Part shown: piece by piece, positions 4,473-16,279 of the stretch
How the letters are laid out: each line of letters opens with the position of its first letter
Position numbering within the stretch: position 1 is the stretch's first letter
NCBI GenBank assembly: GCA_038496445.1
Contig: JALMLS010000315.1
Location: 62,001 to 126,000, forward strand
Origin: Trichosphaerium sp. ATCC 40318
Taxonomy: Eukaryota; Protista; Tubulinea
Length of the DNA stretch: 64,000 bases
Reading direction: 5' to 3'
Position numbers and translations under genes: made by a program
Notes under the pieces: generated by a model
What the model was told of the DNA's origin: nothing
Seen by the model: only the letters and a program-made list of their open reading frames with translations
The model's database searches: none

Positions 4473-7400
4473 CTATTCCATGTTGGCTTGCATGTACCAG
4501 TAATTTTGTGTTGTCACCATGCTATAGAAATTAACAGCGGTGTGTTCTATACGCTTATCATGAATATCTATTATGAGCGCTAAACCCGGTGATTCAACAC
4601 AAAACTTGTGAAAACCTGGCATCTTTGAAAGTAACAATCCACCTCTAAAGCAAGAAAAGTAAGCTCTTGAAGGTTGTACCACCTCCATTAAAACATTCAC
4701 TTTAAAAAATTTTACCTTACGACATCATAAGGATCCTGCAATGAGTTTCTGATATTAAACGAAATGCCAGCCTTAAAAAACAATCAGTTTGAACGCAACA
4801 TTTTATGGATGTGACAGAAAAAAAAAAACGTTTACTTTTTTGAGATCTTGGGTTAGGCTGCTTCTCATTTCGCTGGTGATACCTCTGCCTATATAGATGT
4901 TATACATAGTAGGTTATATCAAAAGGATTTAACTCGTTACCTGAAAGGACTATCGCATTCCACAATTCTTCCTGAATTGATGATGCACATTTTTCTATTG
5001 CAGATTTAACAGCATTGGCATAATCTTCTCCCACTATTATTACAACTGCATCTTTAATAACGGCTCCACAATACACTAAATGGTGTTACTAAAAAAAGTT
5101 CCACAGATTACTTACCTGGTGCTACACACCGGACTTCGTGACCAAGAGATATGACAACACCTACATATTATTAAACATCTTTTTTTTTTTAGTTCAAGGC
5201 CAAAAGCACCATTTGTCAATCCATGATTTAGAAGTATGAGTGTGGCCGCATTAGCTATAGATATACTAGGAATATTACAAGTAATAAATAGGATATTCTT
5301 TATAGCCATTTTGTGTTTCTTCGACCAACCTAAATGAAGAGAGTAAGCATATTTGGTTAGTAACTTTTTCGTGTTTGTTTACCGGTTGGTGGCTCGGCAA
5401 TCAATAATGGATGATGGTTAGGTACTCTTTTCCATTCACAAAACATGCCAGCGATAAATTCTGGTAGTGTAGAGCTTTCAAAAACAAAACGTTAACAAAC
5501 AAGCAAGTTTTGGTTTTGATAAAAAAATCACACCCATCAACAACGTTTCCTTCTTTGGTGGTCCTAATAATAATTATTATTATGACTTTATAATAGGAAC
5601 CTTATTTTTAAAAAGGTGTCCATCTTGCCAGTTTTTTGAGGAAGGTAGAGGAGAGCCGTAAATATTTATCTCAGTTTTTTCCAAAAAAAATAAGAATGAA
5701 TCAGACTTCACGTGCCTGTGTTGAATTTCTTTTGGATGGTTTTGCTCAATATCTTCTCCTATATAGTATCTACTCCATTTTATCCTACGTGTGTGCAAAT
5801 CAAATATACTAGTACCAGTGAATTAGACAAAACATCTTTTCAAAAAAAAACTAGGAAAAGAAGTGCAATAAAAAACTGTACCGTGGCGCTTTTGCTACAA
5901 TTGCTTTTATTTCTTGGAATTGCTCTCTATCAGTTCTAGTTGTGCATAAACCACCTTTGATAGAATAGCTTCCAAGATCAAATACAGCTACAACAAGAAA
6001 AATAAATAACAAGCAACAATACAATTTCTGTACCAAATTCAAGGCCCTTGCTTTTGCTCAGACCTTCAACAATACTGCGTTGCTTGTAGACACTATACCA
6101 ATCTTTCACTGCAGGTTCAATCTAAACCAGTTAACATAAAGACCATTCAAAAGATCCGTGTGAGTACTTTAAGTTGCCCTTTAGCATTTATTGCTCTCAA
6201 ACCACCTACTGCATTATTCCATCTCTTCTTGTATTTATCACTCCATATACTGCCATCCCTTGCAATAATATAGTACACCTTGTACAAGTTTAGCAATAGT
6301 ATAAAATAAAGAAGTATAAAATAGCTAATACCCTTGAAGTAGCAAATACTGAAACAACTTCTTTCGGAGAAAGATATTCAAAGATCATACAATATAATTC
6401 TATGGGCAGAGGTAAACTATCAAGTTGTTCAAAGTCTATCATTTATCATAAGTATGTAAGGCAAGCTATTAAAAATAAGGTAGTAGCAGTATTAGTACCA
6501 GAAACATCAATGGCTTCATGTTGAAGTTTTATTGCTTTTCTGTAAGTTTCAATAAATCCTTTTGTGTCTCCTGCTTCTTCAAGATCATATGCCTATAACT
6601 TGTTTATTCTCGAGTCTCCCAGATATATTTCGTTCATACCTTGTTGTAATAGAAAACTGTCTTCAAATAACCTGGATCTTTTGTAAATCTATTGGACAAG
6701 GACGTGGCAGATTGGTCAACACGCATAAACATAATTTCCGTTCTGAAAATATATTTCACACCCTAAAAAAAAAAGTCACGTTGGTTACCACATAACTAAG
6801 ACGCTTGGGCGTTTTTTGTTTACGAATGTGTACCTTAATAACAGGATCTCCTTGATGTAATACATTGTGATTAAACACAAGTGCAGTACCTGCTTTAGGG
6901 CTAACTTTGACTGCTTCTTCATCACCATCATAAAACACAGTATTTCCCCCTTTTGAAGAATTGTTAACCCAGTTCTCAAATAAAGTACCAACCTTCGAAA
7001 TCATCGTTCAGGTAGACAACAACAGTAAAAACACTGCACTCGTCATGACGAGGAACCCAAGGGCCATCGATATGCTTGTTAAATGACCCACCTTTAGTGT
7101 ATTTTCCAAACTAATAAAAAAAGAAATTAAAACAAAGTCAATTGTAACCATTCTACCTTAAAACACTCGTTCAACCGAGATGGACGCCATAAACCACCAT
7201 TACCGAATCCCATTGGGCGAATTTGAACATCAGATCTGGTTAAAGTGCCCTGTAAAAAGTAAGGAAGTTAAGTTACGAATAAGCAAGAAAAACCAGAAAG
7301 CATAATTTAGTTAAATGACGTGACCACAACGTACTTCCAATCGTTTCCAAAGACTATTTGCTAAACTGTCAGATAGTATAATAAGCTGTTCATTGGATCT

Positions 7401-8478
7401 ATAGTCTTTAGGAAACTGTTTCTTCAAAGATTTCCAACCAATCTTCTCACACTTGTTTATGTAATAATCACACTCAGTCTTAGACATAATACCATCCACA
7501 GTGAAGCACTTTGCACCAGGTACTTTAAGAGATCTACGCTTTACTGTTGCCGGTTGTAAAAGAGATGCTGGAGTTTTTATACGCTTATACTTATTGCCAG
7601 AAGTAACAACCATGTCTTCAACAGTTATGTCCTTACAACACAACTTTTAATGAAATGCGAACAAAAAACCAATCAAAACAAAACTATACCTCTTCTAGTA
7701 CAGGAGGGTTTAAGAGTATTTCTCCAACAGTCTTCAGTTCATCTCCTTGTGGAATCCTATCAAAGAAAAAGGAGTAAATAAACGAACAAGCTCACAAGCA
7801 CACTCTGTTTTAAATCCAACATTAATTTTTGTTTCATCGACTTTTAGTCCTGATAGCTATTTAACGTACTGTTGGAGAGGTAACTGCCAAACGTGATACT
7901 TTCTACTGGATGCATTTGAACCTTCAAAAAATTAAACAACTTCTATTAACAACAACAAGCTTACCAGCTTTACGCAACAAACGCAGTGCATCCCATTGCT
8001 TTGCCAAGCATGCAACTATAATTATATTCAGTACTTTATTCAATATACTGTCACGTGCTTTCAAAAGGAAAAGGCCATAAACTCGAATGTAAATTGATAT
8101 CGGCACCACAACCAATAAGATAATCGATTACTTCTACATTGCCCTAAATTGCAGAAAAAAACTTGTTAGCTGTTTCTCGTTAACAGCGCATCAAATGCTT
8201 TTAAATTGACTCTCACCAGAGCACTTGCTATGTGAAGTAGCGTTGGGCACTGTTTGTCTTGCTTGTAGTCCAGTTTTAGCAAAGTACGGAGTTTGTTGTA
8301 TGCCGCTGGAAGACACGGATATGGCTGTATGTTTTTGGGCGTTACAACGCTGTTTACGCCATCTACATCGAAACTTAATGGTAGAAAACAAAAGAGACAC
8401 CACAGTACGTTTATTAACCCAAACAGTAGCTAAATCCACCGTAAATTTATCTAGCGGCTTTGAAGTAGCACTTCCCAT
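4473..8478 (-). CDS. Multidomain protein: N-myristoylation motif, ankyrin repeats, 2OG-Fe(II) oxygenase (P4H-like), F-box, divergent actin-like domain
   Basis: Phase-consistent exons: MGSATSK; TLLHIASALGNVEVIDYLIGCGADIN; FNKHIDG..VVYLNDDFEGG.T.F..LVFNHNVLHQGDPVIKGVKYIFRTEIMF; LPLPIELYCMIFEYLSPKEVV; AVFDLGSYSIKGG, HPLLIAEP, GVVISLGHEVRCVAPV, EELWNAIVLSG, VRGGLLLS. Confidence 0.85.
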
Positions 8479-9440: not shown

Positions 9441-11547
9441 ATGGAGTACACGCGTGTTTTTCTGGTCCTTCTTCTTGCTGTAGTTACAGCTAGAACAGCC
9501 TTTGATTTTAACACTAATTCTGCGTCACTTCGAGCTGGCGCTGCTAAAGTGAATGCTACGATGCCTATCGGTGTACCTCTTGGTACGTAATTAACTTTTA
9601 GCATTTTTCCTGACACTTTTCTCTAGCTGGATACGTGCGTTCAAACATTAGAACCGTAGCCCTTATTAGCCTCCCTAGGGTGACCGTAGGGTAGAGTTTT
9701 GGCCTATACCGGATATTCTCCCTTACAGTAATTTTATGACTGGAAAGTACGGTCACGTGCTAAATGTTGTCCAAAACAATGTTTTTCTTCTTGTAGACGC
9801 ACATGCGCAATACTAAAACTGTGTTTATAGCGTTGGTCACATTGAACCTATTTGGGTCAAGGCTATTGTTATAGATGATGGTAAAGAAAAGCTTGCGTTC
9901 GTAACTATGGACGGAATAGGGTAATACATCTTTGTAGTCAAGAGAAACTGTTTTTTCAAATTTTAATGTTCTTCTTCAGAGCGGATGGTAACTTAGTAGA
10001 TATGGCTTGGAATATGGCCACCGATGATGGATTCACCGTACCGTTTTCAAACGTGATACTGTCTGCGTCTCATACGCATAGTGGCCCTGGTTTGTTCAAC
10101 AAAAACAATTTTGTTTTTTAACATTTTTTACAGGCGCAATCTCTCCTGAATTTCTGTGGTCTATAGCTCCTGCTACCGATCTTATGGTACCAGAGATACA
10201 AAGGATGTTTGCAGGATGTATTGCCGAAGCTATGGTACTTTATCGCCATGACAATGAAACCAGTTAGTCTGAACTAACTCGGCTAGGTAAAAGCTGAACA
10301 AAACCTTCAGGACGCAATGCTCGGCATTACAGTTGCCAATCTAACAGGCGTAACACGTAACAGACGCGCGAAGATTAGTAAATATGTCAATGTTGACACT
10401 ATCGATCCAAATCTGGCAGTGATTCGAGTGGACGATATGAAAGGTGGTGTCATTGGTACCGGTACGTAATAACAATTTTATATTGAACTTCAGTGTCTTA
10501 AACGCCTTTACCTTTAGTATGGAATTTTGCTATTCATGGTACTTGCTATGGTCCTAGTAATTTGAAATTTTCTGGAGATATAATGGGACACACAAATACA
10601 CTCATTGAGCAAAACATTGGTACGGTTCAATAAAATATATCAAACTCCTAAGTTTGCGATTCTTACTTTTTTCTTAAAGGTGGTGTATCGCTTTTTATCA
10701 ATGCAGATGCTGGAGATATTGATCCAAGTACGTTTAATGATACTTAATAATACTTATAGATCAACGTAGCTTCCGAATCATGTGCACAAGAGCCAAATTT
10801 TTCAGGATCAACAACAATTATGAACAAAGTTGTTCAAGTCCGAAACAGCATTAAAACATCTTCAATCGTTGCCCTCACAGCATACTCTGAGAATGTACCT
10901 TTCGGTTCAACCAACTTGAACGTTACACTAGAACGTTTTGCGAATTGCACAACAGGTACGCAATTCCGCATCAACAAGCATCCTAATGATCGTAATTTAT
11001 TTAGGAGGAGCATTGGATATATGCTCACTCTGCAAAGTCTTGGGTTGTGATATTAACGCTCACCTGGGTGATGCGTGGATAGAAAACAAACCTAAATTCA
11101 CAGCATTCAAAATAGTAGTTGATGATGTTTCAACTGTTGTTGTTACAGTCCCTGGTAAGGCACCTTTTGTTAAGACTTTTTCTGGCTTAGTTTTTTTTTT
11201 TTACCTTAAAGGTGAGGCTTTGATTGAGCTTGGTTGGCAAATTCGTAACGACACAGAAAAGCTTGGGTTTGATCAAACATTGTTCGCTGGATATAGTACG
11301 CCTTGTTAACACGTTTAGAGTAACTTTTGCTTACATCTTGTCAAAAGGTAACGCTCACATGGGATACTTTGCGACAGCAAATGAATACGAAATTGGCGGC
11401 TATGAGTCTCAGCTTACTTTGTGGGGTACTTTTAAAACACGTGTTGTACGATCGGCTAATATGTCTTTAATAGGTATAGACACTGCTAATATGATTCGCA
11501 ATGGTGCTTACAAAGTAGCTTCAAAGATATCCCAAATGTCTCCTTGA
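9441..11547 (+). CDS. Secreted neutral/alkaline ceramidase family protein
   Basis: Signal peptide, LRAGAAKVNATMPIGVPLAGY, ILSASHTHSGP, WNFAIHGTC, TVPGE, GYSNAHMGYFATANEYEIGGYES. Confidence 0.88.
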
Positions 11548-12168
11548 GAATTTTGTGACAGTTATTCCTACTTTTTTCTTTGTCCAAAGAAATTTATCAT
11601 TTCTATTTGTAAGGCTGTTTAATGAATTGACTCATATGTTCCTTATTCATGCTAATTTGCTATCAATTTGCCGTCTTCATCCCATGCTTTACACTCTCCA
11701 ATTTGTTTACCAAAAACATAGTTTCTTAGAAAGTTCAACTGACCATTAGAACACCACATATTGCTCTCTCCTTTTGACCATTGACATAATACTCAAGGTT
11801 CCATAATTAACCATTAGAAACACCTCTTGTAATCTCCTTTGAAGCAATCCTCCAGTGTAATAACATTGCATTTCCATTTGTCCATGTAAGCATGATCCAA
11901 CCTGTTGATGCTTCAATTGTGCTACAACACTTAGGTCAAGTAGTAACCAATGCTCACTCGGTAGAATTTATCAAAAACAAATCTTTTGTTGTTGAGCACT
12001 GAGTTTGGAAACTACTACAAATTAATTTATATTAGTGTTTTAGATAATACTACACTCCAGTTTCTGTTGTTTTAAGTTTAACTGAACCGGTTGAGGTTAA
12101 GTCACATGATTGGTAAGTTTGTTCAGTACAAAATGATTTTACAATATTGCTTCGAAATTCGATTTCTC

Positions 12169-14608
12169 TCAATGGTTGCTTCCACGTCGTTTACTTGATG
12201 ATTTCTTACCAGTACTTGACCTTCGCCCACTATTGCTATTTATTGAATCTGATTTAGACACTGCAGTTTGAAGGACGTTAACTGTGATGTTTGACACATA
12301 GTGTTTTTTTACTGAAGCCAATTTCTAGCAATAATAAGAATATGTTACGTCTTTTCAACACAACTGCTACGTACCCCAGGGCCTAAAGGTACACCTTTTT
12401 TATGTTTTTGTATTGCTGTTAGAACAGATATAAGTGTTTCAAGGCCATGAACATATCGCTAGTGAAAGTGTTAGTTAACACACAAAATCAAAGATAAACC
12501 TACGCTATCGATTTTGCCAGATGATGCAGTGTGAGCAAAGTCTACCATTCTCACATTGACATTAGGCTTACCACCACCTTCTATATAAGTGTTAAAGCGA
12601 CCATAGCGTATGTACAAGGGCGTACTTTCTGCTCCATCGTAACAAAACAATATACTACTTCCAACAAAAGTGAATTGTGTTTGTTTGTTAAACCATTCCA
12701 GTAATTCCTTAAGGATTGGTACAGCTTCATCAATAACCTACAAAGTATTACATCAATAACATAACATAAAGATTAACTGATAGCTCTTACATCATATCTA
12801 ATCTCATTACCATTATCAAAAAAGAGTTGAACAGCGCTTTCCTAGAAATTGGATCAGTTTTCAAACTTTTCAAAGAAATAGCAGCGACATACCACGTTCT
12901 TATTTTTTAAATGTACGCCCCAATCTTTGCCTCGTTTTATAAACTCTTTAGCAGCCACTTGCCAGGTTCTACGAACAGATAAGTAATCAGTATGTAAGCG
13001 ATAAGCAGAATGTGTACCTTATGCCAACTATTCTAAAGCCAACCGTAGAAGACGTAGACATGGTATCTAACGAACTCTGAACAGCCTTTTTTGTAAGATT
13101 TGCATCTTTTTCATATGTTCTTGAACCCATCTTTATATCACATACACAAGGTTGTTCCATGCCTATGAAACAAAAGGTAAGCGAGAAGATTGTTTACAAA
13201 TGTCATCTTTTGGTACCATGTGTCAAATCTTCAAGTAGAAGAAAATGATTATAACTGCCTGCTTGTGCTCCTTTAGCCCTTGTTCTACCATAGTACTAAA
13301 CCATATTGTTAGAATAATGTATACTACAAGAGTATAAAATGCAATCTAACCTTAGGAAAGAACTTGGCAATAGAAGGATATTCAGGAAGCTGCGTCAATT
13401 GTTCATAAAAATCAAACTCTTTTGCTACAATCAATAGTCAGTATAGAGCACCTGCTGATATCCCTTAAAATATCGCTTATACCTGAGAAGTGCTTCATCA
13501 CCATATTCCCTTGTTTCTTCATTCCTTTCTCCTCACCTGTGTGTCCACCAGTCTGAGAAGTAAACGCTTCAGTTTTAGTAACAACTGAGTTCTCTCCAAT
13601 TTCAATGGCTTGTACAACAACATCAGCTGTGCATCCCTTCATAACTTCAAGCAAGTATTTCTCCTTTTTACAAGCGTGAATGAACTCTTTCTGAGTCACC
13701 TTACCATCACCATCTAAAAACAAATCAAAAAAAAAACATCACCAAAACAAGGCTTTCTTTTTATACCTGAATCCATCCTTTTAGCTAAAGAAAGAAGCTC
13801 ATCTCTCTTAGACTTTGTTGGATCTCCAGAAATAAGGCTATTCGTGCTTTGTGTCAAACTTAAAAAGAAAAGTAAGCCGGTTTGTTTCAACAAAGTGAAA
13901 AAGACTGTTTTTGGATTCGTACTGATTTGATGCTTTCAATAAATGCTCTACAAAGTCATCAACCTCCTTGTTATCCAAATATCCGTTCCCATCAGTATCA
14001 AAGACGCGGAATGCAACTAATAAAACAAGTTTCAGACCTTTTTTTTGTTTTTATCGTTGAATCCCAATCAAAACACACGCACATTCTAGTTTTTCATCTG
14101 GTGTTTGCGTTTTGAGCATTGTACAACCCAAAATAAATTCCTGAGCAGTTTTAGAAATATTTTTAGGTTTTTTTTAATTAAAACCTTCCAAAGAGGCAGT
14201 TTACCTTAAAACATACTACGCCCTGCGTAGAAACGTTAGTTTTTATACATTAAAAGCGATTACGTACGGTATTGTCGCTGTCAAAAATATGAAACACCTA
14301 AAAATACTGTTATTGGCTTATATTGTACAGTTTGGTACGTACTTGGCGCCAGAATTGCTTGCTACCGCTATGCGTTGAAAGTTCCTTTAGAAAACTTAAA
14401 AATAACTTCAATAGACTATCCTACCTGACAGAACTCCTTTTCTGTCATTATCAAGTTCGGGTACTTTTTTTCGAAGTCACAAAACATCTTTTTCGCTTCT
14501 TGTTTGCTAACTACGCTTGATAAGCATAACCATAAAGCAATGAGGCGTACTATTTGGGTTTGCAGCCAATTCTTTTAGAACGGCAGACTTGTTTACTTTA
14601 TTTCCCAT
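12169..14608 (-). CDS. Recoverin/NCS-type EF-hand protein fused to an inositol polyphosphate kinase (IPK superfamily); 3' end uncertain
   Basis: MGNKVNK; EF loops DSDNTGVVCFKE, DTDGNGYLDNKE, DSDGDGKVTQKE; then QTGGH, LLLEDLT, PCVCDIKMG (PxxxDxKxG), SSILF, MVDFAH. Confidence 0.88.
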
Positions 14609-14863
14609 CCTTATACACTGACTCGTTCAAAACGTTATTTACGGGTAGTGTTAGATCACCTTGGGTCTACTTAAACTAATTAAGTCCACTTCCCTAAACA
14701 GGAATCAAAAACTTGGCAATCTCAAGCGGCAGATTGCTGCGTGAACAAAAAAACAGTTAAATAAAGATAAACCTTCTTATACGCTTTATAACTACATCAG
14801 CTCGCTTCGTTCCCTTTGGCATACACGTCTGAGATAACATCACAAAGTCAATTTTATTGTAGA

Positions 14864-16279
14864 CTACACCTTTGGACAAAATGCATTCATCAAAGCAGGT
14901 ACTTTTGTCTCAAAGTATTCACTTCCTTTTGACGGAGTATTCTTTTCGTCACCCCACATTATAACACCATCTGCGCCTGCTCTACTACTCTCTTCCCAAT
15001 ACATTGACATGTCAACATCCATCTAAAAATAACAGTTATAATTACGTAGTGCTTAAGAAGCTCGTGACTGCTAGTCAGAACTGCTACTTTAACAATATGC
15101 GTACCACAAAATCTATTCCATTGTGGTACCTATGCCAGGTATACGCAAATACTGGTTTCTTTACAGACGCCAGCTTTGCTGTTTAGAAACGGTTAGTCTT
15201 TTTTTTTTTGACTTTATAAACTGTTGTACTTACAGCATCGGACAGCTTCTTGTACATTGCTAAAGATATATTCTCTATCAAATATATTATGCTGATATCA
15301 CTTTGATTAATTATCATACCTGTTACGGTCTTCAATTGCCTTTGTTGTACTTGCATAAAACTGATAAACAGATGGACAAATAATATCCTCCAAATTCCAA
15401 AGCCAAATCAACTCGTTGTTTTTCTCTCTCAAGTAGTCTCCATGACTTGTGTTATAACCGTTATAGTATTCTCTAATAGGATAACCATAGCAACCAACTT
15501 TCCTACATACCAATAAGACTTAAAGAACACCGAAAACAAACATACAAATTAGGTCGTAATTTATGAATAGTTTCTATCGTTATTGAGAAAACATCACGTG
15601 CTGCCTTTGTGAAATCCACTTTTGCTTGCTCTTCTATTTCTGTAGCATTCTTTTCTGGGTATTGCTTACGAGCTAGTGCAAGTGACATATTTATATAAGG
15701 TGCCTCTATGAGAGAACATCAAACCTCGATAAGCAAAAAAAAAAAAATTATCCAAAACCATAACCTTTTTTTTCCTTACCTGTACTGTTTTCTTCCCAAA
15801 TTAGATTCCAGGCCTCATAATCAATACTGTAAAATTATTAACGGTCAAAATAAAGGATGTATCATACTCTATTTGGCTGACAGTGTCAACATTAGGGATG
15901 AATTTATCCAAATATTGTTTAATATACTCGACATGTAAGGAAAGGTTGCCTAACTGCGGGATACCACCGTTAATTATTTGGCCATTATCCACTCGCGGTA
16001 GTAAACCCAGTAGCCCTTCAGAACCCTCGTAAACTACGTAATAAGAGTGTAAGCCTTAGAATGCGATGAAAAAGTTTTTCAAAAATTCGAAACAAAATTA
16101 GTTAGTATTCGCACCAGGTTTAGGTGTCATTGTTATTTGTGGAACTGCTTTTTCGATAGAATCAGTGTCAACAAAAGATACATCGAATTTAAACTCGAAA
16201 GGGTAGCTACAGTCAAAACTGTGAGACGAAGCAAACGCACGTGCGTGAGTGTTCCAACTTGTAAAATACGACTTGCCAT
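14864..16279 (-). CDS. Hyaluronidase-like glycoside hydrolase (GH56)
   Basis: INGGIPQLGNLSLH, catalytic IDYEAW, KLRPN..GCYGYP, NNELIWLW..ICPSVY, GADGVIMWG; hydrophobic N-terminus; start approximate. Confidence 0.88.

Follow-up and report, generated by a model that had tools for sequence, protein, structure and literature searches.

We analysed a 64,000-nucleotide stretch of the genome of the amoeba Trichosphaerium sp. ATCC 40318 (contig JALMLS010000315.1, positions 62,001 to 126,000), referred to below as the window. On its minus strand lies a gene of 17 predicted exons whose product would join an EF-hand Ca2+ sensor of the neuronal calcium sensor (NCS)/recoverin type to an inositol polyphosphate kinase (IPK) domain. 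The sequence analysis confirmed that this is one gene, encoding a predicted single-chain fusion of sensor and kinase. The coordinates of all features are collected in Table 1.

The fusion exon and the gene model

The fusion of the two halves can be read from a single exon. An open frame on the minus strand runs without a stop codon from 13723 to 13412 and passes through '...DGDGKVTQKEF...SQTGGHTGEEKG...'. Along this frame the EF4 loop residues DGDGKVTQKE are followed by the exiting helix, the sequence 'ADVVVQAIEIG', about 13 residues and 'SQTGGHTGEEKGMKKQGNMVMKHF', the latter being the start of the IPK domain. The connector between the NCS-type C-terminal helix and the kinase is thus only about 13 amino acids long. 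Since EF4 and the QTGGH motif sit in one open exon, the fusion is independent of any splice call. An earlier note on this DNA, which was made from the sequence alone, had claimed an NCS/recoverin-type sensor fused to an IPK, with the last EF hand and QTGGH in the same exon and all IPK catalytic motifs following. Each of these statements agrees with what we found; the conserved glycine at position 2, the sensor matches and the colinear relatives in other amoebae are described below.

The junction is also present in other proteins. Residues 156-223 of P0001, a translated transcript of a marine protist (MMETSP), align over exon 9 as a single unbroken tblastn segment. A HMMER search with exon 9, run exhaustively over 1.84 billion representatives (E<=0.001), gave P0001 (502 aa) as the sole match; it is matched over residues 157-223 and shows the same architecture. 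This search is too insensitive for counting family members and served as an entry point. In every family member about 43 aa, among them a conserved hydrophobic helix, lie between EF4 and QxxGH.

The gene model was built by hand by reading the minus strand over 14700-12000. It starts with an ATG at 14608, ends with a TGA stop at 12171-12169 and encodes 535 aa; its ends agree exactly with those proposed in the earlier note. An in-frame stop lies 18 nt 5' of the ATG. All 16 predicted introns are of the GT..AG type, with lengths of 40-66 nt (mean 52). For intron 2, a 19-nt version (product '...CQLFLSFLKEL') was discarded; the alignment with relatives favours 40 nt (14424-14385), which yields 'EFCQELSTHSG' and matches 'EFIQELSAISG' of the relatives. 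Residues 1 to about 480 of the model are colinear with seven proteins in the databases that share its architecture (BLASTP, E from 1e-125 for P0001 to 1e-64 for P0007). The least certain part of the model is intron 16 together with the 51-aa tail, and retention of this intron would give the alternative protein end '...GPGVRSSCVEKT'. The introns of the gene are very uniform in length. Five of the 16 begin with GTACG (four with GTACGT or GTACGC, one with GTACGA), which looks like a genome-specific donor consensus.

Table 1. Features of the predicted sensor-kinase gene (positions in the window)
Feature	Position	Strand	Remarks
Whole gene	12169..14608	minus	17 exons, product 535 aa; hand-built model, colinear with relatives P0001-P0007
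Exons 1-6	14608-14551, 14510-14425, 14384-14343, 14297-14268, 14222-14205, 14140-14083	minus	hand-built model
Exons 7-12	14016-13923, 13858-13767, 13713-13483, 13424-13351, 13295-13217, 13162-13018	minus	hand-built model
Exons 13-17	12968-12893, 12841-12791, 12737-12504, 12458-12375, 12324-12169	minus	hand-built model
Start MGNKVNK	14588..14608	minus	Gly2 in N-myristoylation consensus; PROSITE PS00008-type pattern
EF-hand 1, EKKYPNLIMTEKE	14434..14472	minus	degenerate; Pro in loop, compare CPxG of NCS proteins; direct reading
EF-hand 2 loop, DSDNTGVVCFKE	14138..14282	minus	split over exons 4-6; fits PS00018-type EF-loop pattern
EF-hand 3 loop, DTDGNGYLDNKE	13964..13999	minus	canonical; Pfam EF-hand_1 on exon 7, 3e-6
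EF-hand 4 loop, DSDGDGKVTQKE	13685..13773	minus	canonical, spans intron 8; fits EF-loop pattern
Exon 9, fusion exon	13483..13713	minus	open frame; most of EF4 loop, exiting helix, NCS-type C-terminal helix, connector, IPK start
Helix ADVVVQAIEIG	13627-13595	minus	resembles NCS C-terminal helix
IPK start QTGGH	13555-13541	minus	exon 9
ATP-site strand MVMKHF	13504-13487	minus	exon 9
Rest of IPK catalytic domain, exons 10-16	12375..13424	minus	Pfam PF03770 on exons 12 and 15; PDB matches to IPMK and IP3K chains
LLLEDLT	13241-13221	minus	IPK domain
PCVCDIKMG	13151-13125	minus	IPK motif
SSILFCYDG	12659-12633	minus	IPK motif
VRMVDFAH	12554-12531	minus	IPK motif
Exon 17, 51-aa tail ending GRRSSTGKKSSSKRRGSNH	12169..12324	minus	11 K/R, 1 D/E, 16 S/T

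The sensor and the kinase

All nine sequences with intact N-termini, the window protein and eight relatives, start with MG[NQ] and fit the N-myristoylation pattern. The first EF hand carries a proline in its loop, within KKYPNL in the window protein and within K(Y/F)P(D/S)G at the equivalent site of the relatives. The other three loops of the window protein (residues 68-79, 104-115 and 158-169) fit the canonical PS00018-type EF pattern. The EF2 loop is unusual in having Thr at position 5 and Cys at position 9. The Pfam match on exon 7 lies above the gathering score, and the ligand residues D, D, G and E of the EF3 loop are invariant in an alignment of six relatives.

To which EF-hand family the sensor belongs is clearest in Balamuthia mandrillaris. 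Residues 1-179 of its sensor match residues 1-179 of hippocalcin, HPCAL1 and neurocalcin delta at 1e-37 to 1e-34, whereas calcineurin B (1e-16) and calmodulin (1e-12) are far weaker. For P0021, the closest relative of the window protein and like P0001 an MMETSP transcript, recoverin, NCS-1 and hippocalcin are matched at about 1e-15 and calcineurin B at 5e-12, with a chimera of calmodulin and calcineurin B on top. The N-terminal domain of the AlphaFold model of P0021 matches myristoylated apo-NCS1 in Foldseek, and the N-terminal domain of the window protein matches its family relatives at 2e-32 to 3e-29. When a single EF-hand exon of the window was compared with the PDB, the calbindin and calmodulin matches were generic and hence not diagnostic. 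The window sensor is therefore probably of the NCS/recoverin type, by transitive homology through its relatives together with the features read directly from its sequence.

The kinase half was detected by the IPK profile PF03770 in exon 12 (9e-14, 52.2 bits) and exon 15 (1.5e-12, 48.3 bits), both above the cut-off of 22.2, and the relatives score 159-174 bits across the full profile. QTGGH, PCVCDIKMG, SSILFCYDG and VRMVDFAH are all present, and across the family alignments there is no variation at the D, K, G, SS and DFAH positions. Judged by these motifs, a catalytically intact kinase domain is supported.

The earlier note had left open whether the kinase is an IP3K, an IPMK or an IP6K. Against solved structures, the kinase domain of the relatives matches the human IPMK core best (2e-33), followed by Entamoeba IP6KA (EhIP6KA, 6e-18), plant IPMK (4e-16), yeast IPMK (3e-10) and IP3K-A (4e-6). 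In the window itself exon 15 matches only IPMK chains in the PDB, while the weak PDB matches of exon 12 are to IP3K-B/C and IPMK, with IP3K-B/C slightly better. In the P0021 model, where the kinase has a predicted local distance difference test (pLDDT) score of 80-95, Foldseek again ranks human IPMK first (E 3e-21, template modelling (TM) score 0.83-0.86, 31% identity). EhIP6KA (TM 0.84-0.85) and yeast Ipk2 come next, and the IP3Ks reach a TM of 0.60-0.72. The ESM Atlas gave no feature match that could be used. An insert of the IP3K type was not found between DxKxG and SSLL; this segment measures about 105 aa and aligns without gaps with IPMK-like relatives. A maximum-likelihood tree of 47 kinase domains places the window protein as sister to P0001 (SH-aLRT 93), both within an amoebozoan clade rich in fusions (97), which also contains paralogues with a C1 domain and an IPK and which lies apart from the fungal Kcs1-type clade; this tree has few named references and does not separate IPMK from IP6K. 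By sequence and predicted fold we call the kinase IPMK-like and not IP3K-like, with IPMK ahead of IP6K and IP3K far behind. This refines the earlier assignment.

Relatives in amoebae, membrane modules and neighbouring genes

Relatives were gathered by word-index searches starting from P0001, the family profile and the kinase region, which depend on shared words and on a length window. A sensor, an IPK domain and a C1 domain follow each other in P0001 and P0021 (C1 partial in P0001), in P0002 from Flabellula baltica and in P0003 from Dermamoeba algensis. The Acanthamoeba sequences P0004 and P0022, taken from Logan contigs, consist of sensor, IPK and a C-terminal region, and P0007 from A. castellanii Neff (XP_004337146, UniProt L8GR65) of sensor and IPK. 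In Balamuthia mandrillaris P0006 (KAL6058532), sensor and IPK are followed by a weak dysferlin/Pex24p-like end (2.5e-4, below threshold), and the N-truncated metatranscriptome sequence P0005 carries a C2 domain after the IPK. Only the last sensor helices remain in P0035 from Rhizamoeba, and P0036 from Difflugia has a degenerate sensor. By these sequences the sensor-IPK family spans the lobose amoebae, both Discosea and Tubulinea. No member was seen in Dictyostelium, Entamoeba or outside Amoebozoa in the word-index searches, which cannot prove absence.

That the fusion is transcribed as such in relatives is indicated by several observations. The Trinity open reading frames (ORFs) of relatives are flagged 'complete'. 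An uninterrupted ORF of 567 aa is found in four Acanthamoeba Logan contigs from different runs, and the genome copy has introns, one of them exactly at the QVAGH junction. Since the contig ORF is unbroken where the genome has introns, the contigs represent spliced transcripts of a fused mRNA. The conservation of the design across amoebae argues that selection holds sensor and kinase together.

Two database entries of the family are annotated in a way that conceals it. The Balamuthia protein (JAVKOQ020000162.1, 3001-5505) is named 'Guanylyl cyclase-activating protein 1' (GCAP1), which hides its IPK domain. In the gene model of A. castellanii Neff (KB008036.1, 3001-8126), two introns have been retained and translated (as a poly-Val stretch and 'GKRSYLFTLHW...'), and the model stops early; the transcript-derived P0022 (567 aa) extends into a region annotated as the next Neff gene (6665-8129). 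The C-terminal 100 aa of the Balamuthia protein carry a GW.YS...VRRRKW motif that is common to Acanthamoeba.

The region after the kinase differs between family members. No Pfam domain was found in the exon 17 tail of the window protein, and the DNA downstream of the kinase gave no tblastn match to the C1, C2 and dysferlin-like modules of the relatives. By its composition, the basic, Ser-rich tail could bind acidic lipids or act as a nuclear signal. Within the one kinase clade the membrane module is swapped: C1 follows the kinase in Flabellula, Dermamoeba, Rhizamoeba and the MMETSP sequence, P0005 has C2 in that place, and C1 precedes the kinase, with no sensor, in Balamuthia P0008 and Dracoamoeba P0009. 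The C1, C2 and dysferlin-like ends of the relatives point to membranes, and C1 would point to diacylglycerol (DAG), the other product of phospholipase C (PLC).

The fusion gene is bounded on both sides by other genes, one GH56-like and one neutral-ceramidase-like. Upstream, on the minus strand at 14864-16000, lies an intron-split gene resembling GH56 hyaluronidases, whose last ORF ends at 14864. Its ORF pieces match Pfam Glyco_hydro_56 over profile positions 64-227 (E 2e-5 to 3e-4), one of three just above the gathering score of 23.2 bits and two just below it. The GH56 family is chiefly one of animals and venoms, and one would not expect a member in an amoeba. Downstream, at about 9900-11750 on the plus strand and hence convergent, weak matches (E about 0.01) to the neutral/alkaline ceramidase family PF04734 fall on the two ends of the profile, and this is probably an ordinary ceramidase gene.

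Proposed mechanism, alternatives and known systems

It seems reasonably likely that the protein is a cis-acting Ca2+ switch, in which a myristoylated sensor activates the IPMK-like kinase, holds it at the membrane, or both. The fusion protein would be N-myristoylated at Gly2, and Ca2+ binding to EF2-4 would cause a conformational change of the sensor. The last helix of the sensor would pass this change to the first strand of the kinase N-lobe, with which it is nearly continuous; for this reason a change in the sensor should switch the kinase. The outcome might be relief of autoinhibition, a hold on the membrane or a combination of both. The kinase would then phosphorylate Ins(1,4,5)P3 (IP3) or higher inositol phosphates near the place where PLC makes them. 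We infer the dependence on Ca2+, the autoinhibition in cis, the substrate and the use of the myristoyl group as a switch and not as a fixed anchor, while the allosteric step from sensor to kinase is purely postulated. Precedents exist in the calmodulin-activated IP3Ks and in DGK-alpha, which make a proposal of allosteric control and feedback reasonable.

Several points weigh against this mechanism. No docking between sensor and kinase is predicted in the AlphaFold model of P0021 (predicted TM score 0.53, linker pLDDT <50). In P0001 and P0002 EF4 is lost, and EF2 and/or EF4 are degenerate, so that not all members of the family can be full Ca2+ sensors. The NCS character of the window sensor is reached through relatives, and in its own subclade the separation from calcineurin B is less clear (1e-15 versus 5e-12). 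NCS-1/Frq1, KChIP1 and the GCAPs are not known to perform a Ca2+-myristoyl switch. IPMKs tend to be soluble or nuclear proteins, and the basic tail could act in nuclear targeting and not as a membrane patch. Finally, expression and splicing of the gene in this organism are predicted only; a look-up of RNA sequencing runs for 12100-14700 listed none.

A wider version of the Ca2+ switch is possible, and we put it forward tentatively. The family might be a coincidence detector for PLC output that evolved independently in lobose amoebae. The NCS domain would read Ca2+ and a C1, C2 or other lipid module (in the window protein, the basic tail) would read DAG or acidic lipid, and the two together would turn on an IPMK-type kinase that clears or converts IP3 at the membrane on which it arises.

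The opposite possibility, which we regard as rather doubtful, is that there is no switch and that the myristoylated sensor tethers the kinase at all times, as NCS-1/Frq1 does for Pik1. Ca2+ would then have a modest effect at most, and the EF hands might be largely structural. It fits this picture that the fusion is kept in P0001 and P0002 despite the damaged EF hands, that relatives bear additional constitutive or lipid-gated membrane modules (C1, C2, dysferlin-like), that interdomain packing is not predicted and that many NCS proteins are not known to switch. However, the ligand residues of EF3 are invariant in all members and the window protein retains three canonical EF loops. Moreover, the best solved matches of the Balamuthia orthologue belong to the switch-competent hippocalcin/neurocalcin class.

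Two further alternatives concern the substrate. That the IPMK-like domain acts mainly on PtdIns(4,5)P2, in the manner of the PI 3-kinase activity of mammalian IPMK, is compatible with Ca2+ control and seems unlikely to us. Such an activity is known for mammalian IPMK only, and a membrane location fits the capture of IP3 at the PLC site equally well. On the other hand, the nearest solved relative is human IPMK, including structure 5w2i, which was soaked with a PtdIns(4,5)P2 analogue. A lipid substrate would also explain the accumulation of membrane modules in a family in which the myristoyl consensus is paired with C1, C2 or dysferlin-like domains. Still less probable is an enzyme of the IP6K type, which would make IP7 from IP6 and link Ca2+ to phosphate and energy signalling and not to IP3 removal. 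The rank of EhIP6KA as second-best solved relative, a Balamuthia paralogue in the same clade that was automatically named IP6K1 and the fungal Kcs1-type proteins among the matches are consistent with it. For the kinase domain of the relatives, though, human IPMK scores about 50 bits above EhIP6KA, exon 15 of the window matches IPMK chains only, and the tree, whose few named references do not settle the subfamily, keeps the amoebozoan and the Kcs1 clades apart. That two adjacent genes for a sensor and a kinase, or a pseudogene, were misread as one is essentially excluded: although splicing in this organism is predicted only, EF4 and QTGGH are not separated by a stop, an intron or room for a promoter, the frame is open throughout with canonical introns, and the junction is kept in at least eight other species, spliced transcripts included.

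The earlier note had also raised the question of whether the architecture is already described. It is present in the databases (L8GR65, KAL6058532), but keyword and accession searches of the literature found no paper describing a fusion of an EF-hand or NCS domain with an IPK. Such a fusion is not mentioned in an IPK survey (PMC8024741), a paper on IP3K evolution (PMC11000326) or a paper on giant-virus IPKs (PMC10897400). Its novelty therefore holds for the literature and not for the sequence record, in which L8GR65 dates from the Neff genome. Reviews treat Ca2+-regulated IP3 phosphorylation as late, animal-specific and calmodulin-based (PMC8024741, PMC11000326).

If the Ca2+ switch proposed here is correct, a second major lineage reached Ca2+-IP3 feedback by domain fusion, placing an NCS sensor, often with a DAG or lipid module, on an IPMK-type kinase. 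On the more tentative coincidence-detector reading, the protein would have converged, within one chain, on the metazoan loop of calmodulin and IP3 3-kinase, and on DGK-alpha in the DAG branch, and Ca2+-coupled IP3 metabolism would exist outside animals. The recurrence of the fusion in many amoebae suggests that Ca2+ is wired to inositol-phosphate signalling within one protein. With its Acanthamoeba orthologue, the family offers a compact and genetically tractable system for the control of an enzyme by an NCS domain in cis.

Both halves of the protein resemble known proteins. Like hippocalcin, neurocalcin delta, recoverin and NCS-1/frequenin, the sensor is a four-EF-hand domain of about 190 aa with an MG start and myristoylation consensus, an EF1 disabled by Pro, a canonical EF3 and a C-terminal helix of the '...VVQAI...' type. 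NCS proteins, however, are free-standing and have separate targets, whereas the amoeba sensor is covalently continuous with an enzyme, and the similarity is weaker in the subclade of the window protein (1e-15). With IPMK/Ipk2/Arg82 (human core 5w2g/5w2h/6m88) the kinase has QxxGH, PxxxDxKxG, SSLL and DFxH in common; its inositol-phosphate-binding segment is likewise short and free of the IP3K insert. Known IPMKs carry no EF-hand domain, myristoylation signal, C1 or C2, and the tree puts the amoebozoan clade inside no named subfamily.

As a design, the fusion can be compared with other kinases that carry a Ca2+ sensor. CDPK and CCaMK also have the sensor in cis and are often N-acylated, but they are kinases of proteins, their calmodulin-like domain is C-terminal and they possess an autoinhibitory junction; catalytic homology is limited to a distant protein-kinase-like fold. 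PfPI4P5K of Apicomplexa (PF3D7_0110600) has an NCS-like EF-hand domain N-terminal to a kinase of the phosphoinositide/inositol pathway, which has been interpreted as Ca2+ control in cis (PMC10543664). It differs in lineage and in its catalytic domain, which has the unrelated fold of the lipid kinase PIP5K; the same paper regards the association of PIP5K with NCS EF hands as restricted to Apicomplexa and says nothing of IPK fusions. The type I diacylglycerol kinases DGK alpha, beta and gamma combine a recoverin-homology domain, EF hands and C1 with a kinase for a PLC product, and the relatives with sensor, IPK and C1 use the same module types. In DGK-alpha, Ca2+ frees an intramolecular lock between EF hands and C1 (PMC4050180). 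These enzymes differ in having a DAG kinase catalytic domain with C1 before it, and the window protein has no C1.

The animal IP3 3-kinases A, B and C belong to the IPK superfamily as well. They use a separate calmodulin and a large IP3-specific insert, whereas the amoeba protein has a fused NCS sensor and lacks the insert. According to a review, IP3 3-kinases arose late, alongside metazoan IP3/Ca2+ signalling (PMC8024741). In both cases the Ca2+ input lies directly N-terminal of the catalytic core, where the calmodulin site of the animal enzymes is found (PDB 2aqx; PMC11000326), and the proposed logic would be the same, namely that Ca2+ speeds the phosphorylation of IP3.

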